Part shown: positions 12,955-58,221 of the stretch, in pieces
Position numbering within the stretch: the first letter of the stretch is position 1
Layout: every line of letters starts with the position of its first letter
Source: Azolla caroliniana
Taxonomy: Eukaryota > Plantae > Polypodiophyta
Assembly: GCA_043228905.1 (NCBI GenBank)
Contig: JBHGNT010000011.1
Coordinates: 4,278,001 to 4,342,000 of the forward strand
Reading direction: 5' to 3'
DNA: 64,000 bases
Position numbers and translations under genes: made by a program
Notes under the pieces: model-generated
Seen by the model: only the letters and a program-made list of their open reading frames with translations
The model's database searches: none
Told to the model about the DNA's origin: nothing

Positions 12955-18630
<5,676 letters not shown>

Positions 18631-18821
18631 CTCTTCATTAACTACCAAAGCTCATGAGTCATGGGGAATGTGGAAACTCATTAGTTATGTGTCATAGAAT
18701 ATGATTCTATGACACATAGTTAATGTATAGAGAGTAGTGGTGTAACTTTTTACCTTTGAGTGTTCATACACTCTCAAGGGTGTGTTCACACATTAGACTA
18801 GGTTGAGCTTGATTCTCAACA

Positions 18822-19102
18822 CTCCTTATGTTCCTTAGTTCGTTTAGACGTCATTTTCGTGTCAATAAGATAAAGATAAAAGAAATGGGTGGGAGACTTA
18901 GCCGAGCCTATGTGGATCACATTCTCGATTCGCACATAGCACACAACGAGCACACCAAAAGAACCCACCAAAGGATCCACACACGCACAGGCAAGGGGTA
19001 GCAGACAATGACAACACGGCAGTAGACTACGGCAATAGACGGCAGACGATGACAGCACGGTAGTAGTGCAACAGCAGAACACACGGCAGAGCAACGCACA
19101 AC
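18822..19102 (-). mobile_element. L0: 5' UTR and ORF1 start of an RTEX-like LINE, interrupted by C2
   Basis: ATG at 18854 gives MTSKRTKEHKE before running into the C2 LTR; resembles the L1 ORF1 start MTSRRNHKE (40637) and has a similar GCC/GTC-rich 5' UTR that begins at a (CT)n tract. Confidence 0.6.
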
Positions 19103-19176
19103 AGAGAGAGAGAGAGAGAGAGAGGGAGGGAGGGAGGGAGAGAGAGAGCGAGAGAGAAAGAAAGAAAGAAAGAAAG
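19103..19176. repeat. (GA)n/(GGGA)n/(GAAA)n microsatellite at the L0/L1 junction
   Basis: Read directly from the sequence. Confidence 0.95.
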
Positions 19177-19988
19177 ATATATTAACGTCTTCTAAGGCCA
19201 AAATTGGCCCATGAGACAAATGGTTTACAACAAAAAATGGGATATTTACCCATTCATCAAAAGTAAAACATAAAAATAAAAATAGAGTTTTAAGCTAAAT
19301 AGTTCTAATAAAATAAAATAACAAACATGTTCTACAATGAAAATGATGTTATATTAGGCCTAATTTCATTTCCATCCAAGTCTCTCGAAGAGGAGCGGGA
19401 GGTCAAAGGGTTTCGATGTGGATGTGGCCCTGGCCCCAATGTAAAAGGTACCCCAACCATAGCTTCGAGTCCACGTAGCTCATGTTCCCTTATCTTCTTA
19501 ATCCTTTCTACTCCGTGTCAACTTGTTTTGAAGCCCAACATCCGAGGGCGTTTGGTTGTTCTTTGTGTTTCGGCTTCCTCAAGAGAGAGGCCGAGCGGCG
19601 TAAGTGTATCCACATTCATCGTCTCCCCTTGTTCCTAAAACATTACACTAGTTACAAGTTGATGAATAGTAAAAGGGTTATGGTTAACACTTTGTAATTT
19701 ATTCTCCCTATGTTGTTTTAGCTCTAAGATATACCTACCTAGTCTCTTTACATCGGAGGTATCTAATAGTTTGGAGAGGGTGGGAGAGGTTCCTAATATG
19801 TCTTGGTATTCCACTCATATCGCGGCATAAGTTGGGCACTTGCATGTGAAGTGATACTCATCCTCTATCTCTATGTGGCATATCACTTTTTTACGGTCTT
19901 CATGAGATATTAGAGTTTGGTCAGTCCCATGGTTGTACTTAAGGGGGGGTAGGTTATTAATGTCTAGGCCGCTTTGCAAGTAACCAAC

Positions 19989-22548
19989 TCACCACAATGC
20001 TATACCAAGAGCTAGTGTCTCCAGACGCATGTAGGGATCGAGATGCCCATAGGCTCGACGGGATATCCTATCTTGTGGTTGGGTATGTATCCGATGAATA
20101 AAAACTACCACTTGAAACAGTGCTTCTACTAACATCGGGGGTAGACTGAACACTGCTCTAATAATGTCATGTGGTATTGTTGATTTGCTTCGGAGTTGAC
20201 GTGATAACATCGTCACCAAAGGTCTCTCTAATTGCGTCCACATGAAAGGTGGTAGACCTGGAGCCCATACTATTGATGCATACATGAGGGAAGGGGTCAC
20301 TAATGAGTCGAAGAGCCATCCCCTACTCCGTGGCTCTTGAAAGTATGCTTGGTGGCATTGTCTCTCTAAGAGTGAGAGGGATGCATACCCTCTCGTTAGC
20401 CTATCTTTGGTTGCCTGGGTCATCGATAATTTACCTGAGCGAGCACTAAAAGTGACTCCCAAGTATACATACGATCCAACTACCTCAACTAGTTTATGAG
20501 AGAGGATTAGGTGACATTTACTCCTAACTCGGGACGATGTATGAAAGATAAGTACTTTAGTTTTCGCTAGATTCACTACTAGTCCTCGTTGTGTACAAAA
20601 GTCATCTAGGGCATTAAGATGCTTTTGTAGGTCGTGTTTTGACTCCGAGAGCAAGACAATGTCTTCTGCATAAAGTAAGAGACTAACTTGCGTATCCCCA
20701 ATAGCTACTCCCTTGCCTCTCTTACGAGCAATAAAATCAGTGATCTCATCAATGTCGATCCCAAAAAGAGTCGGTGATAGGGGGCAACCTTGTTTTACAC
20801 CAATGGTGCTAGTGAAACAATCAGATAGGCCACCTAGGCATCTTATGCACCTAGAGACTTGCTCATATAGGGCATAAATGGCCCAGATCATGTCATTTGG
20901 TATCTCCAAACTCTTACATCTATCAAACAACTTCTCCCTAGGAACTGTGTCAAAGGCTTTGCGGAAGTCCACAAAGCAACAATATGGTTTCTTCTTACGA
21001 GCCTTCGTCTGGTCAATTAAGCACCTAAGTGTGAAGATATGGTCAATAGTGGAGAAGGCTCGTCTAAAGCCAACCTGCTCAGGTGCTCGAAGACTTAATG
21101 TTTCCATATAATCGCTAAGCTCTGCTTCCATTGCCGCACCATATAGTTTAGCGAGTGTATGGCCTATCATAATGGTCCTATATGTATTTGGGTCCATTGG
21201 GTCCCCTCCTTTATGTATAGAGGCCACTGTGTTCATGGTCCATTGTGGTGAAAAACCCTCGGCAAGAGCGAGGTTGAAGATTAGAGTGAGAAAGGGGGCT
21301 AGGCACTCTCGAGCATATATGATGTGCTCGGTTCGCAATCCTGTGTGGTCCATGGATTTCCTATGTTGTAATTTTTTTTATGACCTTCGTGACCCTAGAT
21401 GTCGTGAAAAGTGTCCCCATGTTAAGTTGGGGTGTGGAAGGCATTGGGATGGGTGGTTGGTTCGGGACATGGTAGAGTCTCTCGATATAAGTGTGCCAAA
21501 TATTGGGATCCTCGATGGGTGTTTGTGGTCACAGTTCCCGTAGTCTCTTACATGCAAGGGCGCAATCCCTACTCATGAGCATATGGTAGAGTTCCCAATA
21601 TTGAGATGCTTTCCAAGCTCGTCTTTTACGACGTGTCATCTTGCGCATCTCTTTTCGAGCCTGTATTGAGGAAATAGTACCACTAAGTCACGACACTTTA
21701 AGTTGTCTATACAACTCTCTACAATCCTCGTCATACCACTTGTGCTGTGGCATAGACCCTATTCTACTATGACTGGAGTGTTTCGTGTATGGGAAGCTAC
21801 TAATTGCTTCCGAGTGAAGGGTGTGTGCGAGTTCTATAATGAGGTTCTCTAAAGGCAAGGAAGAATCAAAAGAGGAGAGATGGGCTTGAACATGTCCAGA
21901 GTAGATGTCAGTGAGCTCATGCGTGAAATGTATTATGGTGTGCTGGTTTGGTTGACTAGAGTTGGAGGCGTGGGAGGTGTCGCATTTTCGCTCAAAGTAT
22001 AGGAAGCTATGGTCTGCACCAATGGGGCATGGGTCCACCCGGAAGGAGTTAACCATGTGGGTAGCTTCAGGGCATCCTATTAGGTAATCAACTGTGCTTT
22101 CCCCTCCTCCATGTGGGAAACATGTGAGCGCTTCCGAGCCCGGCCACTTCGCTAAGCCATTATATATGATCATCTGGTGTCGGCTTCCAAGTTCAAGCAG
22201 ATGATGGCCAAAGCTTGTGGCGTCCACACCTTGATCCTTTGATGTACGCGTTATGTCTAAGTCTAAAGGGTCGACATTCACCATTTCGAGGTTTCTATCC
22301 ATTTGAAATATTGTGCATTGTCGGGATTGGGTTCTCGCATTGAAATCTCCTACAAGGAAGACTTTCCCTTGAGAAGAATATTGGATTATGTCATCCGATA
22401 AAGGTTCATATGGAGAAGGCCCATGCGGCGTTCCTTCATCAACTATACTCGCCTCTCCAGCCATATTATACCGGGATCCTTTCGAGGGGAAGTAACACAC
22501 AGTGATAAATATCTCTTGGTCCTTGCTAGTGAGGACTTTCACCCACAT
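19989..22548 (-). pseudogene. L1 ORF2 (endonuclease C-terminal half and reverse transcriptase), disrupted
   Basis: ORFs 21688-22548 and 19989-21353; catalytic YADD changed to YAED. Confidence 0.9.
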
Positions 22549-23164
22549 AAAACGGTGTCGTGAAGAAAACCGGCCATAGGTGGAGTCGGAGAGAAAGCGC
22601 GTAAACCGGCCCTTACACGGATGGACGCGTGACTTGATATTTTGTACACGAACCGGTGGATGTAGATACTAAGCCACACGCATTTATTAGAGGGGGATTG
22701 TGCATATCCCTGTCAGAGGGACAAGGAATAAAGCGAATGGACAAGGAAAAAAAGGGAGGAGATCGCACGGGAGAGAGAGGAGGAAGCGCTACTGCAGAAC
22801 CGAGGGGGGAGCTCTCTCTCTTCTCCTACAACCATCATTCTCTGCGGGCGTCGGGAGTTCGCTACCTCTGCTTAGGGGACAGCCCGTGTGCTTCCAGCAG
22901 AGTCTCTCCTTCCCCCCCTTTGTTTTTGGGAGTCGTGTGACTGTCGTCGGTGTGCGTGAGTAGGGTCCCCGTGTCGGGTTCGTCACCGCCTTGTCAGTTG
23001 TAACCGTTGGAGCTTGTAATCTCTTGTCATTGTAATTAAGTGTTACGTTCTATATCTCTCTTTCTCGCTTCCACGTGTCAGTGAATCTCTCTCTCGCTCC
23101 TCGGTCCAAGACCGCCGTGGTCCCGCCCCTTTCTACACGTACGCACGTAACAACGCGACATATT

Positions 23165-23182
23165 TAGTGAACCCGACGTGAA
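23165..23182 (+). promoter_or_regulatory. G2 primer binding site complementary to tRNA-Trp
   Basis: TAGTGAACCCGACGTGAA versus TGGTGAACCCGACGTGAA expected from the plant tRNA-Trp 3' end as recalled (one mismatch). Confidence 0.8.
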
Positions 23183-24545
23183 AAGGCGGCAAAGGAGTCG
23201 AAAGATGAGGGGATCGGAGCTAGCAAAGGCAATGGCGGTGGCCGTCGACCAGCTGGTGAGCGCTTGTGAGGGAACGGGTACCCTCGACAAAGCCATTGAA
23301 TCAATCGTCGGCTCTATAGGCCGTTTCGGAGGGAAAGATGCCACAAGTTATTTGGAGGCTTACCGGGACGAAATGACCATGAGGGATATCCCAGTGGATA
23401 GGCGGCTGTCCGGATTCCCTCGGGTGGTGACGCCGGGCATCCATGCGGAGGTGCTCGAGGTGCTGGCCGGATGCCAGACTTGGGAGGAGTTCGAGCTGCA
23501 GCTCCTCGAGAAGTACGGGTTTGATGACTCACACCGGCTGTCGAGGCGGGACTTCATGGCGTGGGTGGAAAGCCCCGGAAAGGGGAGGAACACGTCGGTG
23601 CTCCTCCAGGAGTTCGAAAAATGGTTCGCGCGGCTGTCGACGCTGGACCGGATGGTACTCGAAACAAGTCGAGTACTGTTGTTTGTCAAGTCGGTGGATG
23701 CGCTCGACAGAGAAAAGGTGGGTCCCCTATTGGAAACGGACGAAGGGCTCACGATGGATTGGGCCATGGTAAAACGGGTCTACAGCCGTTTCGACAAACG
23801 GCACGATTGGAGCGACGGAAGCACGTCGGGGTCGGGGCCGGTCCCGGGGAGGAGGCTCGAGGAGCCGGTTTCGGTGCCGGTTGGGAGGAAGGAAGAGACC
23901 CGAATCTGGCCGGAGTCGGGGTCGGCATCAAACGACGTGGTCAGAGGCCCATCCGGAGGAGCGGCTCTGGAGGAGCTAACACAAATGGTGCACGACCTGC
24001 AGATCGCACAGGCCCGGAGACGATGGTGAAAAACCTCGCGACCGGAGGCGCCGGCTGGGCAACGGTCTTTGTCGGAATTCCGTGCTCGGCCACAACCGAG
24101 GAACAGGATCGATTCACAGAAAACGGGAAATGCAACAATGCACGAAAACAATAGAGAGAAGGGCACACTGGATGTTTTACGTGGAAAACCCTAAATGGGA
24201 AAAACCACGGGAGTGCAAGACTCCAACTATCACTATACGCGGGAATGTACAATGGCGAGCTGCAAGGCGACGACCTTGAGATCGCTGTCCTCGCCACAGG
24301 CGGCGGTATTACACAGAGGCGTCGACCTCTTCCTTCCTCCTTCTCTCTCACTCTCTCTCGGCTGCTCTCACTTCGCTCCCTCTTAGTGGAAAACAGAAAA
24401 ATGAGCAACAGCAGCCTTAACTGTTTGCCCTAAGTCATATTTATACACATATGACTTTCGGGCTATTTACAAATATAGCCTCAAGGGCTCTTGGCAAACA
24501 TATTCACAAATATGTCTCCGCATCCGGATCTCTCTCCGGGTACAT

Positions 24546-24707
24546 TCATCATCCGGCTCCGTAACCGGGGTCTTCATCATCCGGCTCCGTAGCCGGGGTC
24601 TTCATCATCCGGCTCCGTAACCGGGGTCTTCATCATCCGGCTCCGTAGCCGGGGTCTTCATCATCCGGCTCCGTAACCGGGGTCTTCATCATCCGGCTCC
24701 GTAACCG
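24546..24707. repeat. 28-bp tandem repeat in C4 U3 (6 copies here, 4 at ~29360-29465)
   Basis: Unit TCTTCATCATCCGGCTCCGTA(A/G)CCGGGG. Confidence 0.95.
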
Positions 24708-24778
24708 CAACCGGGCTTGCCGTCATTCATCTCCGGACATCCCATCCGGAGGGACCGAAATCCCAACAAACTCCCCCT

Positions 24779-27700
24779 TCACTTCGGCATGGGATGTCTC
24801 TCCAGTCCGATCCTCTTCCGGCATGCTTCCAGCTTGTCGGGTGTGAGCACCTTGGTCAGCATATCCGACCCGTTCTCGTCCGTGTAGACCTTCGTCAGCA
24901 CGAACTCCTTGTCTTCTATCCTTTCCCGAATCCAGTGATATCTTCGCTGGATGTGCTTCGTCCGGGAGGGATAAGCCGCGTTCTTCGCAAGGTGGATGGC
25001 ACTCTGACTGTCGCAGTAGAGTCGGTACTCCTCCTGCTGGATACCGAGCTCTCTAATGAAGTCCTTCATCCATATTATTTCCTTGCCGGCTTCAACAGCC
25101 GCCATGTACTCCGCCTCCGTGGTTGACAACGCAACCGTCTTCTGCAGCCTCGACTGCCACGAAACAGCTCCACCTGCATACGTCATCACATACCCTGATG
25201 TGGACCGGCTGGTATCTGCATCAGCCGACATATCCGAATCGGTAAAGCCGTCGAATTCGGGCTTACCGGAGCCGAATCGGAGGCACACGTTTGCCGTGCC
25301 CTTCAGGTATCGGAGTATCCACTTGACCGCGTTCCAGTGCTCTTTGCCGGGATTGCTCATGTACCGGCTCACCACTCCAACTGCATATCCTATGTCCGGT
25401 CTTGTACACACCATTGCGTACATTAAGCTTCCGACGGCAGAGGCATATGGTACTTTCATCATGTCCTCCTTCTCAGCCTTTGTCTTGGGGCTTTGCTTGC
25501 TGGACAACTTGCAGTTTCCCGGGAGGGTTGACCCGACCGGTCTTGCTTCCGACATGTTGAACCGGTGAAGCACCTTTGTCACGTACATCTCCTATGACAG
25601 CCACAACTGCTTCTTCTTCCGGTCCCGGATGATGTGCATCCCTAGTATTTGCCTCGCCGGACCCAGGTCCTTCAATGAGAAGGTTCGGTGAAGCGCTTTC
25701 TTCAGCGTCCGTATCTTGACCTGGTCCCGTCCGACGATCAACATGTCGTCCACGTACAGGAGGAGTATTAGAGAGTCTCCTCCTTCGAACTTCTTCACAA
25801 ACACGCAGTGATCAGACTGCGTTTTGTGGTACCCTTCGTCGGTCATGAAGGAGTCGAACTTCCGGTACCATTGCCGGGGAGCCTGCTTCAGTCCGTAAAG
25901 GCTCTTCTTCAACCGGCATACCAGGTGCTCCTTCCCTTTCTTCTCGAATCCTTCCGGTTGTTGCATGTAGATCTCTTCTTCGAGGTCACCGTGAAGGAAT
26001 GCCGTCTTCACGTCCATCTGTTCTACCTCGAGGTCCATGCTTGCCACTATGCTCAGCACCGTCCGGATGGAGGTCATCTTCACTACCGGGGCGAATATCT
26101 CGTCGAAGTCGATGCCCTTCTTCTGCTGAAACCCCTTCACCACGATCTTGGCTTTGTATCTCGGGGGGTTTCCGGCATCTCCCGGTTTCAGCTTGAACAC
26201 CCACTTGTTTCGAAGTGCCCGCTTTCCTTTCGGCAACTCCACAAGTTCATATGTGTGGTTCTCATGCAAGGAATCCATCTCGTCCTGCATGGCACTCAAC
26301 CACCTGCAGCTCTGGGTGTCATGCTTTGCTTCTTCAAAGCTCTCCGGCTCCCCTTCGTCGGTTAGCAGCACGTGCTCTGGTTCCGGAAATCTCCGGGGGG
26401 CCCTTCTCTCTCTTAGAGGATATCTCCGTTCCGGAGCTTCGGTAACCGGTTCTTCCGATTCTTCTTCATCCGAATCCATTTCGGGATCAGGGCCGGTTCC
26501 GGTATCATTTTCATCTTCTTCGGCCGGTTCTGTTTCTTCATAGTCTTCGGCCGGATCCTCGAGTGTTAACCGGTCCCTTGCCGGTCGGGACTGCTCCTCG
26601 TAGAGTTGATCCTCACCGGTCGACTTGGAGCTCTTCATCTTCTTCTCCGACTCCCAGTCGGCGAGTGTCTTGTCCTCCATGAAGATGATGTCTCGACTCC
26701 TGAATATCTTCTTGTCGACCGGGTCCCATACTCGGTAGCCGAACTCGTCGTCGCCGTAACCGAGGAATATGCATAGCCGGGTCTTTGGATCTAGCTTTCC
26801 TCTCCGGTCCTTTGCCACATGCACGTATGCGAGACACCCGAACACCTTCAGATGCCGGTAGGACACTTCCTTACCGGTCCACACTTTCTGCGGCGTGTCT
26901 CCGTCCAAAGGTACTGAGGGTGATCTGTTTATCACGTATGTCGCCGTCGACATTGCCTCAGCCCAAAACCCCTTGGGTAATTTCGCATGCGCCAGCATAC
27001 TCCGGACCCTCTCCATTATGGTCCGGTTCATCCTCTCGGCCAGCCCGTTTAGTTCCGGCGTCTTCGGCACAGTAAACTCGAGCCGGATTCCCTTCGAGCG
27101 ACAGTACTCCTGGAACTGCCCCCGGTATTCCCCTCCGTTATCCGCTCGTATCGCTTTCAGCTTCTTGCCGGATTCCCTTTCCACTCTCGCGTGGAGTTCT
27201 TTGAAGACGGACAACACTTGGTCCTTTGTCTTCAACGGCGCCGTCCACAGCTTCCGGCTGTGATCATCAATGAAAGTCACGAAGTACTGGGCTCCGCCAT
27301 GTGACTTCGTTTCTACCTGACACACATCCGTGTGCACCAACTCCAATGGTGCGCTACATCTCGTCGGTGGCCTTGAGTGGAAGGAGGTTCGGTTCTGCTT
27401 ACCGGCCAGGCAATCGGTGCACTTCTCTAGATGCACATGCTTCACTGGAATGAGGTTGTCTTCTGCAAGCCTCTTCATCCCCTTCTCGCTCATGTGGCAC
27501 AGTCTCTTGTGCCACAGCTCACCGGCAGTGTCGGCTGCCACGTTCAGCTCCTCCGGACATAGCCGGGAATTCATCAGGTACAGGGTGTTGACCTTCCGGG
27601 CCCGAGCCACTATCAGGCTCCCCTTGCTGAACTTCATGACACCGTTCCGGATGCTACCCGTGTAGCCTTCATCATCTAGCCTCCCGGCCGAGATCAAGTT

Positions 27701-28867
27701 CAATCGGACCTCCGGAACGTGTCGCACATCCTTCAACAGCATCTTGCATCCGGTTGATGTCAACAGCCACACGTCTCCTATGCCGGCAATCCGGCATGTG
27801 CCTTCATTTCCCATCCGGACACAGCCGTGCTCACCGGCTGTGTAGGATGAGAAGTATTTCTTCTCCGGGGTCAGGTGGAACGACGCTCCGGAATCGACCA
27901 CCCAGGTCATCTCTACACCGGCAAGGTTCAGCTCCCTCTCTTCGGTAATAAGCATTATCTCTTCTTCACTTGCCGCGAGTGCCGTCATTCCTTTCCGGTC
28001 CTGCCCTCGCCGATCCGGACCTCTCCGGTCCGTGGCTCCCCGGTATGCACCGTTTCTCTCCGGTGACTTCTTCGAATCGGTGTCGTCGGCTCCGTTGTCT
28101 TTTCGGTAATGCCGACAATTCTTCCGGAAGTGCCCCGGCTTCCCACAGTGGAAGCATGTGGGTCTTCCTCTTGACTGCGACCGGGTCCCCGACTTCTCCC
28201 GTCTTTGCGGACTCCGGTTCCATTGTCTTCCCCGTTCCGATTCGGTAAGCAGCGCCTTCGAGTCGGAGACCGGTTCTTTATCTCTCCGGCGCGCTTCTTC
28301 GTTCAAAATACTTGTCTTTACTGTTTGTAGGGACAAGTTATCTTCGGTGCAGGAGGTGCTGAGAGTCACCACCAAGTTCTCCCAGCTGTCCGGCAATGTA
28401 CACATCAGGATGATGGCTTGCATTGCATCCTCCAACGGGAACTTGATCGCCGCAAGCTGGTTCACGAATCCCATGAACGTCCTTACGTGTTCCACCATAC
28501 TCTCGCCGTCCCGGTACTTGAGGTTCACTATCTTTCTCATCAGGGAGGTCCGGTTCAACGCATTCTTCCTCTCGTAGAGGCCCGACAGCTTCCTCCACAT
28601 CTCATATGCGTTGGTGTCGTTCGCCACGTGTTGTAGAACGCTCACGTCGACGTATTGCCGAATGGTTGCAACGGATTTCCGGTTCAGAAGCCTCCACTCC
28701 GTCTCAAGTACCCCCTTGGGTATTTCCGACCTGTCGATCGGTTCATACAGGTCCCGAACAATGAGCAGATCCTCCATCTTTATCTTCCAGTCGGCGTAGT
28801 TCTGCGCATTCAGCACCATCATCCCCGGCTGCCCGCTGCTGCCGCCTTCCATTTTCTGTGTTACCAT
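24779..28867 (-). pseudogene. C4 gag-pol, intact except for one nonsense codon at 25592-25594
   Basis: ORFs 25592-28909 and 24779-25588 are in frame; WLS(Q>*)E is consistent with CAG>TAG; CFHCGKPGHFRKNC, VDSGAS, HTDVC, YVDD, LSTTEAEY. Confidence 0.95.
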
Positions 28868-29526
28868 CGCTCTGATACCACTTTGTCGGAATTCCGTGCT
28901 CGGCCACAACCGAGGAACAGGATCGATTCACAGAAAACGGGAAATGCAACAATGCACGAAAACAATAGAGAGAAGGGCACACTGGATGTTTTACGTGGAA
29001 AACCCTAAATGGGAAAAACCACGGGAGTGCAAGACTCCAACTATCACTATACGCGGGAATGTACAATGGCGAGCTGCAAGGCGACGACCTTGAGCTCGCT
29101 GACCTCGCCACAGGCGGCGGTATTACACAGAGGCGTCGACCTCTTCCTTCCTCCTTCTCTCTCACTCTCTCTCGGCTGCTCTCACTTCGCTCCCTCTTAG
29201 TGGAAAACAGAAAAATGAGCAACAGCAGCCTTAACTGTTTGCCCTAAGTCATATTTATACACATATGACTTTCGGGCTATTTACAAATATAGCCTCAAGG
29301 GCTCTTGGCAAACATATTCACAAATATGTCTCCGCATCCGGATCTCTCTCCGGGTACATTCGTCATCCGGCTCCGTAACCGGGGTCTTCATCATCCGGCT
29401 CCGTAGCCGGGGTCTTCATCATCCAGCTCCGTAACCGGGGTCTTCATCATCCGGCTCCGTAACCGCAACCGGGCTTGCCGTCATTCATCTCCGGACATCC
29501 CATCCGGAGGGACCGAAATCCCAACA

Positions 29527-35225: not shown

Positions 35226-35282
<57 letters not shown>

Positions 35283-41490: not shown

Positions 41491-41495
<5 letters not shown>
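41069..41495 (-). mobile_element. Lf: 5'-truncated RTEX-like LINE 3' fragment flanked by (GA)n on both sides
   Basis: Minus-strand translation LSSHSL*CELGCWG..RLCTLC..ESEYHTLIQC (LINE C-terminal Zn-finger region); 3' end homologous to that of L1 (GTCTCAT..hairpin..GAAGACG.TAATAT). Confidence 0.8.
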
Positions 41496-41522
<27 letters not shown>

Positions 41523-41797
41523 GAGGAGGAGGAGAAAGAAAGTAGGAGAAAGAAAGTAGGAGAAACAAGAAAATCAGAGAAACAAAGTAGGACAAAATCA
41601 GAAAATCACAAGGAAAAGAAGGACGAGGAGACACGAGAGGAACAATTATTCGCGGCTACATCGACATAATTGGGCAAGTGCTACAACAACATTCTTCTTC
41701 GACGGGAAGCTCGAATGTCATCGTGTCTATTTCAGGTTAATCATCCTCCTATTAATTTCCTTTTCCTTATAATTGGGGTGTAGTATATCTAGAAGCA

Positions 41798-43225: not shown

Positions 43226-43848
43226 TGAGTGATGAAGATAGTCACATGGAATGTAAGGGGAATTTGTTCTCCGTCCAAGCAGTATGGTATGTGGAAAAGT
43301 ATTTTTAATAGGGAATGGGATATATTATGTGTAGTAGAACATAAGGAGCATGCTAAGTCTCGGTCTTCTTTTCATCATAAGCAATATCACATGTTTTATG
43401 CTAGAGTCAATGGGGGCCCTTATTCAGGTGTAATGCTTATTATAACGGATAGCTTGAAACTGGTAGTGGCTCAAAGAGATGTGCATGGTCGGTTTTTGGT
43501 GGTTGAAGTTAATTATGAAGGGAAACAGATCTAGGTGGTTGGTATTTATGGATCGAGTGTTGCAAGACATCTTATGGAACTTTGGATATGCTTAAATCAA
43601 GTTTTGCTTCATGGGAGATCCGGTTTTTTGTTAGGGGATTTTAATATGTGTTCTGAGGTGGGCCAATCTACTTTGATGCATGGCTTGATGGATGCTCCTG
43701 AACAAGAGGTATGGGATTTGTTTATGATGGATGTTGTAAGGTATGATGCATGGACTTGGATCAATGGAAATGATGTTGGTTATACCTTTCAGTCGGCACA
43801 ATATAGATCAACTTGGAGTAGACTGGATCGCATTTATATTATACATGA

Positions 43849-46800: not shown

Positions 46801-48960
46801 TGTGAGAGGTTGCTAAAAATAGGATCAATTCCTTTGTTGATCCCTACATCAGCTGAGAAACAAGTGAGCGTAGGAGGTACGGAAGAAGAAGGAAACAAAG
46901 ACGAGGAGCCTATATGTGTTGGGACTCAAGCTGAGGGGGAGCTAAAGGTGTATACAAGGAAGAGGAGGCAGAAAGACAGAAATGTGAACACGTCTTCAGC
47001 ACCACATGTGCCATCAAGTTCCATGTCCTGACCTGCCTCGACTTCTGAAATACCTACAGAACTCCCGAACCTAGAAATCACAAGTGATATGATTTCCCCT
47101 CCTTCTCCTATCACGATTAGGAGGACCTCTCGCAGTAATGCAGGGGTCCCTCCTGATCGTTATGGTTTTCCTCATGATATTGCTCAGTTTATCTCTTATT
47201 TTAACATATCAGCTACACATAGAGCATTCATTGCATCATTAGACTCTGTCACTTTACCCAAGTGTTGGCAGGTTGATAAAGAAGATCCAAAATGGAAAGC
47301 AGCCATGCAAGAAGAACTCAGAGCTCTTGAGAAGAACAAAACTTGGGAGATTGTGTCACTACCACCAGGAAAGAAGGTGGTTGGGTGCAAATGGGTGTTT
47401 ACAATAAAACAGACCCCAGAGGGAAAAATAGATCGATACAAGGCACGATTGGTAGCTAAAGGATATAGTCAGACATATGGCATTGACTATGATGAGACTT
47501 TTGCACCTGTGGCGAAGATGAGCACTATTAGAACACTTATTTCCTTAGCAGTGAATAAGGATTGGAAGTTACATCAATTAGATGTAAAAAATGCATTCCT
47601 TCATGGAGAGTTGATGGAGGAAGTGTACATGTATGTTCCCCCAGGTTTCGGTACAATTCAAACAATAGGTAAGATTTGCAAACTTAGGAAGTCGCTTTAT
47701 GGACTGAAGCAATCTCCTAGAGCCTGGCTCAACAGGTTAAGAAGGGCTATGGTGGGTATGGGATACCAACAGACGAATGCAGACCATACAGTGGTCTTTC
47801 GACAACACAAGGAGCATACTACATTGCTTGATGTGTATGTGGATGATATAATTATCACGGGTAACGATGAAGGAGAAATTGCCCAACTGAAGATGCAATT
47901 AGGTAAAGAGTTTGAGGTGAAGAATCAAGGATTTCTACGATACTTTCTTGGAATTGAGGTAGCTTGTGGAGCAAAAGGAGTTGTTCTATCTCAGCGGAAA
48001 TATGTACTAGATCTTCTCAAAGAAACTGGAATGTTGGGTTGTAGGCCTGTAGCTTCTGCAATCGACCAAAAGATCAAGCTAACTGAACTTGCGGGAGAGA
48101 AAGTTGATCGTGAAAGGTATCAAAGATTGGTAGGTCGGCTAATTTATTTGACCCACACCCATCCAGATATCTCATTTGCAGTAAGTGTGGTAAGTCGCTA
48201 CATGCATGATCCGAGGAAAGATCATATGGATGTAGTGTACCATATTCTGAGATATCTCAAAGGTGCCCCAAGGAAGGGATTAATCTTCAGAAAACATGGT
48301 CATTTTAACATTGAGGGCTATTGTGATTCTAATTGGGCCAGTTGTGCTGATGACAGGAAATCCACATCAGGATACTGCATGTTTGTTGGAGGCAATCTGA
48401 TCTCTTGGAAGAGTAAGAAACAGTTAGTAGTAGCAAGGTCAACATCCGAAGTAGAGTATAGAGCTATTGCTATAGGAGCTGCGGAGATGTTATGGTTGCG
48501 AACTCTCCTAGTAGAACTAAAGGTGAATCAAGAAAATCAGATGATGTTGTGGTGTGACAATAAGTCAACAATCAGCATTGCCAACAATCCAGTACAGCAC
48601 GATAGGACCAAACACATCGAAATCGACAGGTTCTTTATCAAGGAAAAGCTTGATAATGGAATATTAAATTTGAGTCATGTTTCTACCGAACATCAAGTAG
48701 CAGATTGTCTTACAAAGGGACTTGGGCCAGTAAGTCTTACTAGATTGTGTGACAAGATGAGCTTAGTGGATATTTTTCGCCTATGTTGAGGGGGAGTGTT
48801 GAGAATGTTTAAAAGTTATAACGGCTAGTTAGCCCAACGGCCAGATCTTGGCCTTTATAAAGAGGGACTTTCTCCTCATGTAAATTGAAGAGATCTCTGT
48901 ATTTTTCTCCCTCCTACCAATGTATATTACTGAACAAATGTGCTTTCTCATATTTCTTTA
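43849..48960 (+). mobile_element. C5: Ale/Retrofit-like copia with short TG..TA LTRs
   Basis: LTRs 43849-44041 and 48797-48960, PBS TGGTATCAGAGC 44042-44053, PPT 48788-48796, TSD CATGA/AATGA (one mismatch). Confidence 0.95.
44320..48789 (+). pseudogene. C5 gag-pol, single frame with two nonsense codons
   Basis: ORFs 44266, 44791 and 47089 share a frame; CYNCGEAGHFKNAC, IDSGAS, HSDVWGP, YVDD, RTKHIEID. Confidence 0.93.
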
Positions 48961-50186
48961 AATGATGATACATTCTTGCCAGAGTTTTTGCCTATGCAAG
49001 TGCATAGGGGGATTGGATCATCAAATCATTTCCCAATTGTTTTGGAATGCACACATCAAACTATGGACGGTTTTAGAGCTTTATTGGGGAGACAACCGTT
49101 GAGATTTAATTCATCTTTTCTTGGACATGATAAATTTAAGCATGCTATAGGACAATTGGTGGGGGAGTTTACAAGACAAGTCAATGTCCATGGTGTTTCT
49201 TCATGGGATATTTGTCTTTCCAATATTCAACGGTTTACACGATATTATGGAATTTATCAAGCATCTATCTGTAAACAAAAGATGAGTTTGTTACAACACT
49301 TTCTAGATAGATGTAATGCATTGTTGGTAAAGATTCCATTTGATGATGTGTTGTTGGATATTCAAGAGACATTGTCACAGGCCTTACAAGTATTAGAGGT
49401 TCGCAGTTATCAACAATCACGAGTGATGGCTATGAAAAATGAAGTACATGATCACAACTGTAATTCACATAAGTTTTACCATGGGTTGCAAGCATCTCAT
49501 GCTAGAATGAATGTGATAAATGTAGAGATTGATGGAACTTTGAATACAAACCCACAAGTGATTATTGATCATTGTGTTAAACATTTCACGAATTGTTTTG
49601 GGCAAGATTGTATTATGAATGATGGCATAACACAAGCGCAATCGATGCTATTTAACTCGGTCAAGGTGAGTGGTGGGCAACATGACATGATTGCATTGGA
49701 GGAGGATATAAAGGAGGAGGAGGTGGAATATGTATTATCACATCTTGCAAGTGATAAAAGCCCGGGTTGGGATGGCATTACGAATGATTTTTTTAAAGCC
49801 TTTTTACATGGACTCAAAGCCCCTCTAACAATGATATTCCAAGAAATATGGAGTTCTGGTAAAATGCCTGATTCATGGAAACTTGGTCTTGTTAAACTTA
49901 TACCAAAAGTTGCATCTCCTACGTCTTTTGCTCAATGGAGACCGATATCATTAATGGGTGGGATGTATAAGATTTTTGCCAAAGTAATTGCAAATAGACT
50001 TCAAAAGGTGTTGTTGTCTATGGTCCATCCAATGCAATATGGGTTTATTAAGGGAAGGGACATCCTGCATAATATTTTGAATGTGCAAATGGTAGTGGAT
50101 TATGCAAAGGAATCCAAACAACAAATTGTAATGATACAACTCGACATCGAGAAGGCATATGATCATGTAAGTTGGTCTTTTATTAC

Positions 50187-50482
50187 TGTTGAGAATCAAG
50201 CTCAACTTGGTCTAGTGTGTGAACTCACCTTGAGAGTGAAGAGACACCTCAACGGTCAAGAGTCACCATTATGTCACCACTTTGTATTCTAGCATTTAGT
50301 ATGAGTCATAGAATCATATTCTATGACACATAACTTATGAGCTTTCACATTCCCCATGCTCCATGAGACTTGTAGTTAATGAAGAGAGAGGGTGACTACA
50401 TAAAGCACCCTCCTCCCACCTTGTATAATGTTGAGTCTTTCTCCTTTGTCAAAATATTTTACCTTGCGTATTCTCTATGTTA

Positions 50483-50528
<46 letters not shown>

Positions 50529-53500
50529 TAACTCACATCTCTTCCGCTTCACAAGAATCCATCTCTTGATTCTTTACATGGTATCAGAGCAAGGTTGGTA
50601 GCTCGATCTAGCCCATTCACCTCATCGTGATCGTGTGTTGTGCTCTACGCCGACGACCAAGAACCAGCTCATAGCTATCGTAGCTTCGCTACATAGCTCG
50701 CATTCGAAGAGAGAAGAAGAAGAAGAAGAATCGATATAATGAATACTCAAATGGGGAGCGCTCTCCCTACCGAGAAGTTGGATCGAAACAACTTCGCATC
50801 TTGGGAGTACAAGATGCACCAATACCTTGTCGGACAAGGCTATTGGAGCTACATCAAAGGAGCGCATGAAGACCGACCCGCCGAAGCGGCTCCCGGATAC
50901 GCGACATGGGAGCAAGCCGCAAGCCGCGTGATGTATTGTTTGGCGACATGTGTTCACGACCACATGCTCGGTTACATTTGAGAAGCCAAGACGCCAAAGG
51001 AAGCGTGGGAAAATCTACGAAAGATTTTCGCCGCCAACACGACCGCGAGGAAGCTTCAACTCCGCCAAGAGTTGAACAACATTCAACAAAGGGACACGTC
51101 AATCACGACATACACCTTGAAGATCAAGGAGCTTTGCGAATCGCTCGGCTCAATAAGCGTAAGTATAGATGATGATGAGAGGGTGCAAATATGCCTCGGC
51201 GGCCTCGCACCACGGTTCGGCACGATGCGAACCGCCGTTCTAGCACGGGAGAAATCTCCCTCCTTCTTCAAGCTCCAATCAATGCTATTGGTCGAAGAAA
51301 ACCATGTGCGTACAAGGAGCAATGAGTCGGAAGGCCACATGCTCTACACGCACTCTAATGGAGGAAGAGGACGCGGACGAGCGAGAGGCCGATTCGGCCA
51401 AGGACAAGGCGGACGAGGTCCGACCTACGATAACAACTCCCAATTTCGGCCTCAAAACAGAGGCCAACGAGGAACCTTTGCAAGAAGGGGGAGCTTCCAA
51501 TCCGGCCCGAGCCGTCAAAACGCAACCGAATGCGGATATTGTGGAAAGCTCGGCCACCGTGAAGAAGAGTGCCGAAAGAAGATGCGTGAATCGGCTTCCA
51601 CAAGCCGACAACTCACGAATTACGCACACAATTCCGACTATGAAGAGTATAGCGGAATGTACGGGAACAACTCCGACTACGAAGATCGTGGCGGAATGTA
51701 TGCATGGAACTCCGACCGTGGCGGAATGTTCATGATGAAACATAGAGCAAACTCTATGTCGGCCTCTACCTCAACTAGTGCCCTCAATCCGGAGGACGTA
51801 TGGTTTGTAGACTCCGGAGCCTCAAACCATATGACATCCCATAAAGAATGGTTTCTCGAACTTCGAGAGCCGGAGCGACCCGGTTATGTCGAAACTGGAG
51901 ATGACACTACGCACCCGATTCGGCACATCGGCAATGTTCCGTTCAGCAAAAGGGGTAAGCAAACATACATTAAAAATGTCTTGCATGTTCCCACCATCAC
52001 AAAGAATTTTGTCTCGGTCGGCCAAATGGTTGAGTAAGGGATGCAAGTACGATTCGACCAAGAAGGGTGCTTCATCGAAAAAGAAGGCCGAATCATCGCA
52101 CGTGGAAGAAGAGAGGGCCGGATGTTCATTCTCGATTCGCATGAGATGAAATCCGCCATGTTCGCGAAAAGCACGAAAGCCGACTCCGACATAGAGCTAT
52201 GGCATAAGCGAATGGGCCACATCAATCTCAACAAACTCAAAGCAATGAAATCGAAAGGAGTCGTCATCGAACTCCTGACATTCAAAGAGAAGGAGATTGA
52301 AGGTGTATGCGAAGCGTGCCAATTCGGCAAGCAACACCGACACCCATTTCCGAAGGAGCGGAATGTGAGCAAAGGCGTACTCGACGTAATTCATTCCGAT
52401 GTATGGGGTCCGGCTCAAACGGCGACATTCGGCGGATGCCGATATTACGTGCTATTCATCGACGACTTTTCGAGGCACACTTGGATCTACCCGATGCGGC
52501 AAAAGAGCAAAGTGTTCGGACACTTCCAAAAGTTCAAGAATGAAGTCGAGATAGCCACGGGCCGACATGTACGATGCCTTCGATCGGATGGCGGCAAGGA
52601 GTACTTCTCGGACGATTTCACGACGTATCTCCGAAAGGAAGGAATTCGGTGAGAATTCACTTGCCGACACACTTCGCAACAAAACGGAGTAGCCGAGCGC
52701 AAAAATCGGCACATCCTCGAAGTAGCGCGGGCCATGATGAACGAGAAGCATATGCCCAAGTCATATTGGGCCAAAGCGGCAAATACGGCCGTCTACCTAA
52801 TGAACCGGTGCACAACATCCGGCATGCACGAGGTCACTCCGCACGAAAGATTCTTCGGAAAGAAGCCGAACCTATCACATGTTCGGATATTCGGCTCCAT
52901 TGCATACGTGCACATCCCCGACGAGAAGCGTCAAAAGCTCGACCCGAAGTCGGAGAAATGTATCCTCATAGGATACTCACTGGAGCAAAAGGGGTACAAG
53001 TGCTACAACCCCTCAACTCAAAAATCTCGGGTAAGTCGAGACGCCATCTTTGACGAGTCCGCATCCTTGTACACACCAGAGACAACTCCAACTCCGACTC
53101 CGCTCGACCCGGAATCTGCCGACCAAGAGATCAAGGATGAAGATCGCCCTACGCACATGATTGAAGAAAGTCCGATCACGACCCGATTGAGCGGACCACA
53201 AGAGCCTTTGAGCGATCAAAGCACATCACGGCCTAGCCTGAAGATGGACAAAGGCGAGGCGAAAATGGCGGAATATGAAGACGATTGCTTCGACGACGAT
53301 GAATCGACTCACTCACTCGACAGTGAGTTCGGCGGCTTTGAGGTACCAATCGGAGCAAAGAAAGCCCTCATCTCAGCAAATGAAAAGCTCCGTCGCTCCA
53401 CCCGTGAAAAGAATCTCGTAAGCCGATTCGGCTACAACGATTATATGGCGTACCATTACGCCTTTATGATGAAGGTAGCGACAGTACGAGAGCCGGAAAC

Positions 53501-55714
53501 CTTTTCGGAAGCCGCAAAGGACCCGCGATGGATTGAAGCAATGAACGAGGAGATGCAGGCACTACGGAAGAACGAGACATGGGATCTCGTTCCCACCTCA
53601 CCGCACAAAAAGGCAATCGGATGCAGATGGATCTACAAAGTGAAGTACAACGCGGACGGTTCCGTCAACCGCTACAAAGCTCGACTCGTAGCGAAAAGAT
53701 ACGCTCAGACACATGGCGTCGACTATGAAGAAACCTTTGCCCCGGTGGCAAAGATGACGACGGTGCGGACCGTAATTGCGATTGTTGCGGTGAAAGGGTG
53801 GCACCTCCATCAAATGGATGTCAAGAACGCCTTTCTACAAGGCGAATTAGAAGAGGTGTACATGATCCAACCACCCGGCTTCAACTCGAGCACCCATCCG
53901 AAAGCCATATGCCGACTCAAGAAGCCACTCTACGTCCTCAAGCAAGCACCGCGTGCTTGGCATTCGAAGATAACGCAATATCTTCATCAAATTGGCTTCC
54001 GTATGTCAAAATCAGACAACTCCCTCTACATACGAAGCGATTCCGCAAGTCCGATCGTCATCATCTTATATGTAGATGACCTAGTCATTGGAGGTGAGCA
54101 TCTCGTCGAAATCAATAAAGTCAAATCCCTCCTTTCCGACAAGTTCGAGATGACGGACATGAAGGAGCTCCACTACTTCCTTGGCATCGAGGTAATTCGG
54201 ACTCCGGCCGGAATCATGATCTCCCAACGACACTACATCCTCAACTTGTTATACAAGTTCAGGATGGCTGAGTGCAAATCCGCGGCAACCCCGCTCAATC
54301 GCAATCTCAAACTGGATGCGAACTCCGGCACCAAAGCGTGTGAGCCGACTCAGTATCGGCAACTCATCGGGAGTCTCATCTACCTCACGATCACACGACC
54401 CGATCTCAGTTATCTGGTCGGTCTCCTTAGCCAATTCATGCAAACACCGCGTGATACTCACTTGGATTGCGCTAGGCGAGTTCTACGCTACGTGAGCGGC
54501 ACAATGGATTGCGGCATCCTCTACAAGACCGAAATGCCAATACGACTCGCACAGATGCCAATTGGGCCGGCTACAAAGCCGATAGAAGATCAACCTCCGG
54601 ATTTGTTTTCTCCCTCGGCAGCGGAGCAATATCCTGGAGTAGCAAGAAGCAGCCCACCGTCGCTCTTTCGAGTACGGAGGCGGAATATAGGGGTGCAGTC
54701 GTAGCTGCATGTGAAGCCGTATGGCCCAAGAGGATTTTGAAGGATCTGGGCGTACCCATCAAGGATCCGACTTCCCTTTACTGCGACAACATGAGCAGTA
54801 TCTATCTAGCTCGGAACCCGGTGTTCCACGCGCGGACAAAGCACATCGAAGTGCACTATCACTTCATCCAAGAGCGTGTTCTAGTTGGCGATGTCGACCT
54901 ACAACACATTAGCACCAATCTTCAAACGGCCGACATCTTCACTAAAGCCTTAGGAGCCGACAAGCTATGGCAATTCATGACCGATCTCAGATTGACGATC
55001 CCTGACCTGCCAAGCTTGAGGGGGAGTACTGAAGACACTACGCAATAACGTGTAGATTCCGCAACCGCGCACTACGCAATAACACGTGGATTCCGCAACC
55101 ACGCAACAAAGCCGCGAAGAAAGACGCAAGCCGAAGCACAGACTTCACAACTACGCACGCAAGCCAAAACACTGACTTCGTAACTACGCACAACGCAAGC
55201 TGGAGCACGGATTCTGCAACTCCGCATACATGCGAGTCGACACGAGTCGACGCGGACTCCAGAACGTGAGTTGAAGCGGATTTCGGATACCGTCTGAAAC
55301 CAACCCAACTTGAGCTTGAGGGGGCGTGTTGAGAATCAAGCTCAACTTGGTCTAGTGTGTGAACTCACCTTGAGAGTGAAGAGACACCTCAACGGTCAAG
55401 AGTCACCATTATGTCACCACTTTGTATTCTAGCATTTAGTATGAGTCATAGAATCATATTCTATGACACATAACTTATGAGCTTTCACATTCCCCATGCT
55501 CCATGAGCCTTGTAGTTAATGAAGAGAGAGGGTGACTACATAAAGCACCCTCCTCCCACCTTGTATAATTTTGAGTCTTTCTCCTTTATCAAAATATTTT
55601 ACCTTGTGTATTCTCTGTGTTACACACTCTCTCTCTCTCACTCTCTCTCTCTTACACACACTTATAACTCACATCTCTTCCGCTTCACAAGAATCCATCT
55701 CTTGATTCTTTACA
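50187..55714 (+). mobile_element. C6: full-length copia, same family as C3, inserted in L2 RT
   Basis: LTRs 50187-50578 and 55327-55714, TSD ATTAC (50182-50186, 55715-55719), PBS 50579-50590, PPT 55318-55326. Confidence 0.98.
50739..55048 (+). pseudogene. C6 gag-pol with stops and a frameshift near 54550
   Basis: ORFs 50739, 51072, 52041, 52734, 54509 with canonical copia motifs. Confidence 0.94.
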
Positions 55715-57775
55715 ATTACTCAACTTATGTCTCATATGGGTTTTGGGGAAAGGATATCTCGAATATCGTTGTTGGTGGGATTAGGTGCAGTCTCACACGT
55801 TATGTTAAACAGTGGAGTTACTAAGGCAATACCATTGAAAAGATCACTTAGACAAGGATGCCCATTGAGTCCACTATTACTTGCAATTGCTACACACCCG
55901 ATTTTGGTGAGGATGCATGAGTTGGTGACACGTGGGGAAACAGTTGGATTAGCTCTACCATCATGGAAACATTTGATCGCCCAAGCATTGGCTGATGATT
56001 CATTTTTATTTCTCAAAGCAACACCTGATAACATAGCTAAAGCCATGGAGGTGTGGAATGTGTTCGCATTGGCATCAGGATTACATATAAATATGCAGAA
56101 GTCAATGCTCATTAGATGCACTGAGAGTGATTTGGTGGATCTTGGATGGGGTGGCCAAATATTAGATCAAGGGAATGTGGGTCGACACTTAGGTTACCCT
56201 ATTGGTGTCGATATCTCATCATCACAAAGTTTGAATTGGATATCGGGAACCATTTTGGACAAATTTATGTATTGGAAGTCTCAAGCATGGTCGTTTAGTA
56301 CTCGTCTCAAAGTGGTATAAGCTATAATGATTCCAATGATTTCTTATTTTTTGCCATTGTTACTGTGGACAAAGAAATCACTTGATCATTTAGCTCGTTC
56401 ACTTAAATATACACTATGGAAGAAAGACACAAACCTTGGTATGAGTTGGGTATCATGGAAAAATATTTGTACCCCAAAACAATTAGGGGGTGTTGCTTTA
56501 CTAAATTTAGAAGATCATATGGTGGCTCGAAGATTCAATCTTTTGAAAGGTATGTGCATAGGTACCCAACCTTGGGCAGAAATAATTACTTATTTTGTGG
56601 AAAAGGTTGGTATTTACCATGGGAAAACGAGAATTACAGCTTCGTGGTGGCATGTTGTTAAAAGTACCCGGCAAGTGTTCAGAATCTAGTATGGTTCAAC
56701 AATTGGTGCTTTCTTGGAAACAGTGTTTGTAGTTGTTTAATTGGAGGCCTCTTGAGTGCAGAAAAGATATAAATTCATTGGCAGCAGAGGTGTTAGCAGC
56801 TTCAAGGATATTACACTGGGAGGGAAAAGAAAGTCTAAATTCACAGTTCAATCGAATGGCAAGGCTAGGTTTGATAACTATAGAAGATGGTATTTTAGAG
56901 TCATGTAGGAAAATGATGGCCTTTCGGACAATCAGAAATAAGTTTCATATACCACGTGGATATGGGTATATTTGGCAATCAATATTGCCTAAATTAGTTT
57001 TCCCAATTCCAGAGTTGGTGGTCGAGGAACCATGGAAAGATTGGTCATTTGGTAATGGGAAATTGCTTTATGTGGTGCACACTAATGATGTGTACCATAA
57101 GTTGGTTGAAGATAGAGCTTGGTTTGAAAATAAGGTGTTGGATACATGGAGCATTACTAGAAATGTAAAGTGGTGGCGTAGAGTTTTAGATGCAGGGTGG
57201 CAGTTTCATCTTCCATTATGTGCAAAGGTGTTTCTTTGGCGTGCCATAGTTGGTGGGTTGCCTTTGGCAATGGCCTTAAAACGAAGACATATTTCGAATG
57301 GGACATGTTTTTTCTGTACGGTGTTTGAAGAAGATGTCAGACATAGGTTCATTACATGTTCGGTTGCTAAGGCCATTTGGGTGATTATGTCAAAAATTTA
57401 GGCATCAATAACATGGAATATTTTGTCACCTTATAAATGGGTTTTTATGGATGAGGATAAAGTTATGCCCACACCATCATATAAGGTGGTTTTTTATTAC
57501 CTTAGATATTGGGGGATGTGGTTTAATTGGACCATGAGAAATGAGTTCTTGTTTGATGGACTTCATGGGATAACAAATCCGTAGGATGAAAGGGAAATTG
57601 ATTTGGCAATTTTCACAACTATGTTGTATGGGGATCTTGTCCCAAGAGGAGATAGACTTATGTCATCTAGTTTTACAACACTTGAGAGGGTTTCCCTTGC
57701 ACTATCACTATCTATGAAGTAGTGAAGATAGCAAGGGGTGTATTATCATTTTGTTTTAATAACAAACATTGATTT

Positions 57776-57780
<5 letters not shown>

Positions 57781-57810
<30 letters not shown>

Positions 57811-58221
57811 AGACAACAACTTTGATTGGAAATAATCAATACTCTGTATACATGCAATGTGCTCAGTGAATGGAAATGGAGGGCAAGCACACAGTGTGTG
57901 AGAGAGAGATTGAGTAAGCAGACAACAAATATTCTATTTCAAAACTTAGTACTCAATACTTACAAATGTGCTCACAGAGCACTTTATATACAATGATGCT
58001 GACATGAGTACAATCAACCTATTCAATTCCATTAACATTGATTGACCTACAATATTCCTAAACTAAGTTAGATGCCTAGTTCCTTGATTTTAGTGTCATA
58101 ACGGCCTAACAGCCGATTCGGCCCTATGGCACCCTCTTTCGACAGATAGTCAATCTCTTTAGTCGATTCGCTCTCGGCTTCTTCGGCCGATTCAGTTCGA
58201 TGTTGATCTTGTCACTCAACA
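57781..58221 (-). mobile_element. LTR-X: U3/R half of an older C1-related copia LTR, broken at its (CT)n tract
   Basis: Minus strand starts TGTTGAGTGACAAGATCAAC (C1: TGTTGAGCGGCAAGCTCAAC) and aligns by eye with the C1 LTR through the TATA region and GAGCACA..TACAGAGT.TTGAT..TCTGCTCTCTC. Confidence 0.75.

Follow-up and report, generated by a model that had tools for sequence, protein, structure and literature searches.

A stretch of 64,000 nucleotides from the fern Azolla caroliniana (assembly GCA_043228905.1, contig JBHGNT010000011.1, positions 4,278,001 to 4,342,000; the whole stretch is called the window, and its positions are counted from its first letter) contains four long interspersed nuclear elements (LINEs), designated L0, L1, Lf and L2, which are joined end to end by GA/CT microsatellite tracts. 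The four copies represent two families, an RTE-like family (L0, L1 and Lf) and an L1-type family (L2), and it is likely that they mark one former (CT)n/(GA)n microsatellite of a copia-type long terminal repeat (LTR), designated LTR-X, which was hit repeatedly by both families.

When the nested LTR retrotransposons are removed, the LINE pieces are colinear, as judged by self-comparison and by reading of the junctions, and all four LINE boundaries within the window lie on GA tracts (19103-19177, 41056-41068, 41496-41522 and 57780-57809; located with Tandem Repeats Finder and by direct reading), as was claimed in a preliminary description of this DNA. Perfect GA/CT tracts of at least 12 bp occur 15 times in the window and amount to 401 bp, i.e. 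0.63% of its length, so that the placement of four out of four LINE junctions on such tracts is far beyond chance. The layout given in the preliminary description was likewise recovered, with the RTE-like L0, L1 and Lf arranged head to tail on the minus strand and L2 in the opposite orientation. The tracts had also been read as pure target, and this view had to be revised: they are composites of a family-specific 3' tail and leftover target, the microsatellite tail differing by family, with (CTTT)n(CT)n or (CATTT)n(CT)n in the RTE-like family and (AG)n in the L2 family. The proposal that two unrelated LINE lineages share a self-regenerated GA/CT landing pad is supported by data from two other fern genera, Adiantum and Ceratopteris. 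Open reading frames (ORFs) split by the nested insertions were searched piece by piece; the best matches of the reverse transcriptases (RT) encoded in the window are proteins of Adiantum nelumboides and Ceratopteris richardii (45-65% identity), and none of the proteins of the window itself is in the collection searched. The window has the character of nuclear DNA of a fern.

The RTE-like family in the window and in other ferns

L0 (18822-19102, minus strand) is a fragment of a 5' untranslated region (UTR) that aligns with the 5' region of copy L1 (40600-41055); a copia insertion truncates it at 18822, the LTR of copia A' reaching to 18821, and the 5' end of L0 adjoins the tail of copy L1 (19103-19177, minus strand). 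This tail reads, in the sense direction, (CTTT)5 followed by CT/CCCT repeats, comes directly after a conserved 3' motif, and is fused with leftover target microsatellite; the same tail architecture is found at loci L001, L002, L003, L015 and L018. Copy L1 itself lies on the minus strand in three pieces, with remnants of ORF1, apurinic/apyrimidinic endonuclease (APE) and RT in colinear order. Its 3' piece (19178-22555; mapped also by tblastn with the L001 ORFs, the 3' end being folded) contains the stem-loop (19181-19221), the RT (19452-21386; Pfam RVT_1, E = 4e-31) and the C-terminal part of the APE (21502-22554). The middle piece (34733-35109), which sits between the nested LTR retrotransposons at 22556-34732 and 35110-40204, contains the APE N-terminus (34736-34992); in tblastn, APE amino acids 1-86 map here and the match resumes at 22554. 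The 5' piece (40205-41055) consists of an ORF1 remnant (40208-40504; ORF1 amino acids 69-183 by tblastn) and a GCC/GTY-rich 5' UTR, and direct reading of the sequence shows that its 5' end adjoins the tail of Lf.

Lf (41069-41495, minus strand) is a 5'-truncated copy of a divergent RTE-like subfamily and comprises RT C-terminal coding sequence, the 3' UTR and a stem-loop (41077-41117), after which follows the tail, sense CTAT(CT)6 (41056-41068, minus strand). Its likeness to copy L1 at the DNA level is limited to the last ~59 bp, and in blastx it matches the RT C-terminal regions of two proteins (P0093, E = 2e-11; P0001, E = 5e-6). The coding sequence of Lf begins at the first bases after the (GA)13 tract of 41496-41521, a leftover microsatellite that forms the 5' flank of both Lf (sense (TC)13) and L2. 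A short interspersed nuclear element (SINE) with a LINE 3' end was considered for Lf and was ruled out: a tRNA-like head was not found and the blastx matches are to RT C-terminal coding sequence, so that Lf is a 5'-truncated LINE copy.

Copies L1 and Lf have a common 3' motif that consists of GTCTCATRGG, a hairpin and GAAGACGNTAAT, and that is followed by CTTT or CTAT and then by (CT)n. A related element with ORF1, APE and RT at locus L001 (a contig from ENA; RT identity 58% in tblastn and 63% in BLASTP) ends with the same motif and (CTTT)5(CT)4, after which unrelated DNA begins. Altogether 19 RTE-like 3' ends with this motif and with (CTTT)n or (CATTT)n followed by (CT)n were collected from the window, L001, three Adiantum loci (L002, L003 and L015) and one Ceratopteris locus (L018). 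One common two-stem hairpin was obtained for 15 of the 15 copies that were folded, and its inner stem carries compensatory changes (pairs C-G, U-G and U-A, and G-C and A-U). These are per-sequence folds; RNAalifold on a MAFFT alignment gave the invariant outer stem only, because gaps from differing loop lengths misaligned the inner hairpin. The RTE-like elements have a stem-loop directly upstream of the tail that is conserved by compensatory change, as in LINEs of the stringent type, and judged from its sequence the RTE-like 3' end is built like that of LINEs in which the RT recognises the 3' end of its own element. In every copy the RTE-like sense strand is colinear with (CT)n.

The 5' junctions of the RTE-like family lie in (CT)n in about 24 of 26 resolvable cases, contributed by the window (3), L002 (16), L003 (1), L015 (3) and L018 (1, with a short tract), with L019 and L020 negative; the sample is small and clustered. 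An RT fragment at L004, whose flanks are rearranged and uninformative, was excluded from the counts. Locus L002 (Adiantum nelumboides, JAKNSL020005335.1, 94.5 kb) contains a head-to-tail series of RTE-like copies, at least 13 in number and all on the same strand, and all 16 of its resolvable 5' junctions adjoin (CT)n. They comprise junctions of full-length copies, of copies truncated at amino acid 211 of ORF1, at amino acids 41, 211 and 346 of the APE and at amino acids 1 and 515 of the RT, and of three short 3' fragments; in five of the 16, non-LINE DNA lies upstream of the tract (659-686, 24673-24702, 55852-55879, 59249-59276 and 70617-70675). The same locus holds an empty site: an intact repeat (57981-58629) has (CT)16 in its middle (58424-58455), and a paralogous repeat is split exactly at the tract by a two-copy array (687-16808), the arms being 86% and 91% identical.

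Three further observations were made at L002. The repeat with the (CT)16 pad (57981-58629 and 10-138) has a partial inverted self-match, and it may be a foldback element or an element resembling a miniature inverted-repeat transposable element (MITE). At 43749-43793, an RTE-like copy stops inside the 3' hairpin and (CT)22 follows directly, which might reflect 3' truncation or mis-priming of the copy, or else an insertion that entered the hairpin at a later time. Protein P0020 (L7F22_030895, 765 amino acids) derives from a 78-kb gene model (8001-86568) that joins exons of many LINE copies; this model is an annotation artefact and is flagged here as an error.

Locus L003 provides one further 5' junction, where a tail and (CT)30 are followed by an RTE-like copy truncated at ORF1 amino acid 256, and L015, a second Adiantum locus, provides three. 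The copy of Ceratopteris richardii has the tail (CTTT)5(CT)25 and retains only CTCTCTC at its 5' junction; about 100 bp on from the tail stands TGGTATCAGAGC, the primer-binding-site motif that is also seen after the LTR of the C1 copia element in the window. It is this one downstream motif that suggests an insertion in another copia-LTR pad; a second LTR copy around the insertion was sought, and none is present in the locus.

The L1-type family and the LTR-X microsatellite

L2 lies on the plus strand in three pieces separated by two nested copia elements (43849-48960 and 50187-55714), across both of which its APE and RT frames run on exactly. Piece 1 (41522-43848; tblastn with the L017 ORFs) comprises a purine-rich 5' UTR, ORF1 (41798-43225) and the N-terminal part of the APE (43232-43849). 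Piece 2 (48961-50186; tblastn with the L017 ORFs and Pfam RVT_1) comprises the C-terminal part of the APE, of which amino acids 204-297 resume at 48958, and the N-terminal part of the RT, of which amino acids 1-52 end at 50187. Piece 3 (55715-57779; Pfam RVT_1 and zf-RVT) comprises the C-terminal part of the RT, the zf-RVT domain (56733-57401, E = 1.6e-11) and a 3' UTR ending in GATTTACGA. The ORF1 of the L2 relatives L016 and L017 contains DUF4283; an ORF1 with DUF4283 and a C-terminal zf-RVT are features of plant L1 elements. L2 has the domain set of this group (APE, RT, C-terminal zf-RVT and a plant-type ORF1) and departs from it in having no poly(A) tail.

The lack of poly(A), which had been pointed out in the preliminary description, is accounted for by a different family tail, (AG)n, that takes its place in three independent copies: (AG)n follows the same L2-family 3' end at L009 (2217-2263), at L006 (5809-5845) and in the window, where (AG)15 (57780-57809, plus strand) is the L2 tail merged with the (CT)n of LTR-X. 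The 3' UTR of L2 is 88% identical to that of L009 and 77% identical to that of L006, both from ENA contigs, and the end point is common to them.

Of six 5' junctions in the L2 family, four to five lie in GA tracts; with about 26 junctions for the RTE-like family, the evidence for L2 is the thinner of the two. L2 in the window begins after (GA)13, the full-length copy at L017 after (GA)8 with AT-rich DNA before it, and the copy at L008, which is truncated within the zf-RVT region, after a (GA)9...GAGAGAG tract; the L2 relative at L015 (45% identical) sits after (GA)n tracts, and the junction of copy 1 at L006 is ambiguous (copy 2 is discussed below). The sense strands of L2 and of its L015 relative are colinear with (GA)n. 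Locus L015 mirrors the window: its RTE-like copies and its L2 relative occupy opposite strands, every one of them within GA tracts, and the sense strand of each family agrees with its own tail.

In two L2-family copies an inverted 5' segment overlaps the forward copy (L009, 35-1367 versus 1165-2216; L005, 1886-2119), an arrangement that looks like twin priming. A more distant L1-like element at L002 (88138-91637) has no GA tracts nearby and was taken as an ordinary L1.

LTR-X (57810-58221, minus strand) is the U3/R side of a copia-type LTR, with its TGTTGAG start at 58221, as aligned with the LTRs of C1 (360-721 and 5895-6325); the other part of LTR-X, like the remainder of L0, falls beyond the window. 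On the minus strand its (CT)15 comes after TTGTTGTCTG, and the (CT)n of the C1 LTR comes after TTGTGTTCTG. From this shared context it is plausible that the last tract of the stack occupies the position of the C1 (CT)n, as had been proposed, but a stretch of ~115 bp is duplicated within LTR-X and includes a further, shorter tract, (TC)5, owing to which the assignment of homology is not unique. The wider proposal, that (CT)n tracts of copia LTRs serve as the pad, stands in the restricted form that they are one pad among several, the pad of the Adiantum empty site being a different repeat.

The LTR retrotransposons nested in copy L1 have target-site duplications (TSDs) of ~ACGG (22556-34732, which contains a younger element) and CCTTG (35110-40204), and the second copia element nested in L2 has the TSD ATTAC; (C/A)ATGA is also found among the TSDs of nested elements. 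A young nested element with 99% identical LTRs carries a 28-bp tandem repeat in each LTR (24545-24707 and 29359-29465), with 5.8 copies in one and 3.8 in the other. Copia B (12958-18630, TSD CTCTT) lies within the LTR of the related copia A', whose 5' LTR is thereby split into 12743-12957 and 18631-18821; this accounts for an apparent duplication at 18431-18824. The body of copia A' extends leftwards, is broken by C1 (360-6325, TSD AAAAT) and probably exits the window. The LTRs of copia B contain a compound (TG)n(GA)n microsatellite (18165-18311 and 13001-13066), with (TG)65 in the 5' LTR and a much shorter repeat in the 3' LTR, a difference in length that indicates growth of the microsatellite after insertion. 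The AT-rich right end of the window (62201-62906) has (TATG)29 and a 193-bp tandem duplication and is unrelated to the LINE stack.

Alternative explanations and proposed mechanism

Microsatellite specificity has been assigned to LINEs with the same repeat on both flanks in >20% of copies (PMC4494074). This proportion is exceeded in our small and clustered sample, the orientation to the repeat strand is fixed in both families, and a pre-integration site with the microsatellite is seen in the empty site at L002 and, subject to the duplication in LTR-X, in the comparison of the C1 LTR with LTR-X. The preference for GA/CT microsatellites is thus strong, but it is not absolute, and several points weigh against repeated targeting of one tract. 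The solitary RTE-like copies L019 and L020, from other samples, have no CT tract at the 5' junction, L020 having a short (CTTT) tail only and no CT flank, and in the L2 family the truncated copy 2 at L006 is without GA at its 5' flank, its tail being degenerate. The younger LTRs of the window contain many long (CT)n tracts that no LINE occupies, either because the LINEs were inactive by then or because they insert at a low rate. A single Adiantum locus contributes most junctions, and the Azolla genome was sampled within the window only; TSDs cannot be read inside a microsatellite, and template switching of the RT, instead of the target, is a conceivable source of the (CT)n at a 5' junction.

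Extended to whole arrays, such switching would give concatemers in one event, with the RT, once it has completed or abandoned one RNA, jumping onto a further LINE RNA at its (CU)n tail and the 5' (CT)n being a copied tail. Template jumping is reportedly a property of the R2 RT in vitro, and it predicts the same anatomy, i.e. a tail directly followed by a 5' end. We regard this origin as unlikely nonetheless, for the first copy of the array at L002 has (CT)n upstream, a tract that the paralogous empty site has too, the (CT)n tracts of LTR-X and of the C1 LTR occupy homologous positions (with the above reservation), and the solitary copies L019 and L020 lack an added 5' CT. Furthermore, the array members represent different subfamilies and tails, and nested LTR insertions are found in some of them only.

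An endonuclease-independent origin, in which polypurine/polypyrimidine tracts form unusual structures, break often and capture LINE cDNAs, would fit the use of the same tract by two unrelated families with different endonucleases as well as a preference that is not absolute. It is nevertheless quite improbable in view of the strict orientation rule, according to which the sense strand always corresponds to the element's own tail, as is expected from pairing of a primer with the tail; the APE domains, moreover, are apparently complete in both families.

The simplest view, that the GA tracts are element-encoded tails and nothing else and that the stack is a transposon graveyard formed without targeting, draws on the family-encoded tails and on the dense nesting of LTR elements in the window. 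The preliminary description had itself named non-GA sequence at the 5' junctions of most copies, with GA as a mere element-encoded tail or UTR, as the observation that would speak against targeting; the tails are indeed family-encoded, but the 5' junctions lie in a tract at the frequencies given above for both families. Full-length and variously 5'-truncated copies alike have (CT)n upstream, even beside non-LINE DNA, the empty site has the microsatellite, the junctions are base-exact, and GA/CT tracts make up only the small share of the window stated above, so that we consider this view very doubtful. A single insertion might also have been multiplied in tandem, through unequal crossing-over or slippage of replication at the microsatellite tails, and misalignment of long (CT)n tracts could favour this. 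Such an origin is hardly credible and tenable only for near-identical neighbours, since adjacent units are truncated at different 5' points, belong to different subfamilies and do not share tail type or internal deletions, and L0, L1 and Lf in the window are too diverged for blastn beyond short stretches.

For the preferred explanation, repeated insertion of both families into one microsatellite, the following mechanism is proposed. The RTE-like RNA would end with the stem-loop and (CUUU)n(CU)n, and target-primed reverse transcription would take place on the purine (GA)n strand, which pairs with the tail; the sense strand would then always be colinear with (CT)n. The (AG)n-tailed RNA of L2 would be primed on the pyrimidine strand, which would result in the opposite orientation. 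At each insertion, part of the target tract would stay upstream and a fresh tail would be added downstream, whereby the pad would be regenerated and head-to-tail arrays would grow. We infer the nicked strand, the order of insertions and, as the site selector, the pairing of tail and target, which may act instead of or besides endonuclease specificity.

Tail-target pairing would explain why orientation follows a rule, why one tract serves two unrelated endonucleases and why specificity is incomplete, and it extends a model proposed for RTE elements in which the tail influences the insertion site (PMC6007223). That target choice is mainly a matter of pairing between RNA tail and nicked strand, and that the two lineages converged on the complementary tails (CU)n and (AG)n and so split the strands between them, is a tentative idea, possible but short of probable; the alternative is an endonuclease specificity of the Kibi/Koshi type as the site selector (PMC4494074).

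Relation to known LINEs and significance

The labels that L0, L1 and Lf (RTEX-like) and L2 (Tx1-like) had received in the preliminary description are provisional, and no named LINE references were returned by Pfam, PDB or three homologue searches. Homologues of the RTE-like family are unnamed fern or metagenome proteins, and the PDB matches of its RT to R2 and to L1 structures were weak, and about equally so. Relatives of L2 are few and are from ferns or unnamed, and in the PDB its APE is best matched by the human L1 endonuclease. P0018, an RT protein that has 48% identity to the window LINE RT, is filed under Enterobacter cloacae complex sp. GF14B and probably represents eukaryotic contamination of the bacterial assembly.

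Kibi, Koshi and crocodilian families of the Tx1 clade are specific for (TC)n, (TTC)n and (TTCC)n/(TTTC)n (PMC3812793, PMC4494074), and endonuclease specificity is assumed for the targeting of Kibi and Koshi (PMC4494074). They resemble the fern elements as APE-type LINEs with a polypurine/polypyrimidine microsatellite on both sides, and L2 belongs to the same broad L1 group; the Tx1 clade, however, has been described from animals (PMC4494074), whereas L2 is a fern element with a DUF4283 ORF1 and zf-RVT, and the fern RTE-like family has nothing L1-like about it. Waldo and Mino (R1), Dong (R4), Togen (NeSL) and some HERO families share with the fern LINEs the lifestyle of insertion into simple repeats, but they belong to other clades, use other repeats and are all from animals, and for none of them are long, mixed, head-to-tail arrays described in which a partner family takes the other strand (PMC3812793, PMC4640811).

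Lepidopteran RTE elements, angiosperm RTE elements with (GTT)n, and Bov-B have a simple-repeat tail, generate microsatellites and show a correlation of the tail with the cleavage site (PMC2887409, PMC6007223). The fern element is like them an APE- and RT-encoding LINE with a simple-repeat tail; they differ in being dispersed, with target-site duplications and a T-stretch signature and without insertion into a matching microsatellite. For canonical RTE elements, one ORF only and a 3' UTR of very small length have been described (PMC2887409). The fern RTE-like element has the simple-repeat tail of this group but also an additional ORF1 of at least 302 amino acids, which precedes the APE in L001 and L002, and a longer 3' UTR (~240-440 bp) with the stem-loop.

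Zepp of Chlorella and HeT-A/TART of Drosophila telomeres reportedly form arrays by insertion into or next to earlier copies, and would thus share with the fern LINEs the head-to-tail build-up in which a new copy is the next target; they are said to use poly(A) or chromosome ends, whereas the fern pad is an internal dinucleotide microsatellite. The Drosophila telomere elements are mentioned in PMC10088271.

No description of these fern LINE families was found in the literature searched, Repbase lying outside this search, and the microsatellite-specific LINEs in PMC3812793, PMC4494074 and PMC4640811 are animal examples only, none of them of an RTE-like lineage. Microsatellite-specific LINEs and microsatellite tails of RTE elements are known as such; new by comparison with these sources is their combination in a fern RTE-like lineage together with an L1-type partner. 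If this is true, the microsatellite-specific lifestyle of LINEs reaches plants, by way of a fern lineage outside the clades listed above and an L1-type partner, and two families converge on one pad from opposite strands. The fern system also offers a direct test of whether the tail or the endonuclease picks the site, a question that was raised for RTE elements (PMC6007223).

If the tail-pairing interpretation is true, these elements would represent a natural case of tail-programmable LINE integration, and such tail-guided, repeat-restricted insertion is relevant to the design of retrotransposons for safe-harbour integration. For the fern genomes themselves, it would mean that GA/CT microsatellites are started and extended by LINE insertion, which would also assemble LINE arrays of tens of kilobases. 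Insertion of the two families into GA/CT microsatellites would in itself help to explain such arrays, as well as the long GA/CT tracts, in large fern genomes.

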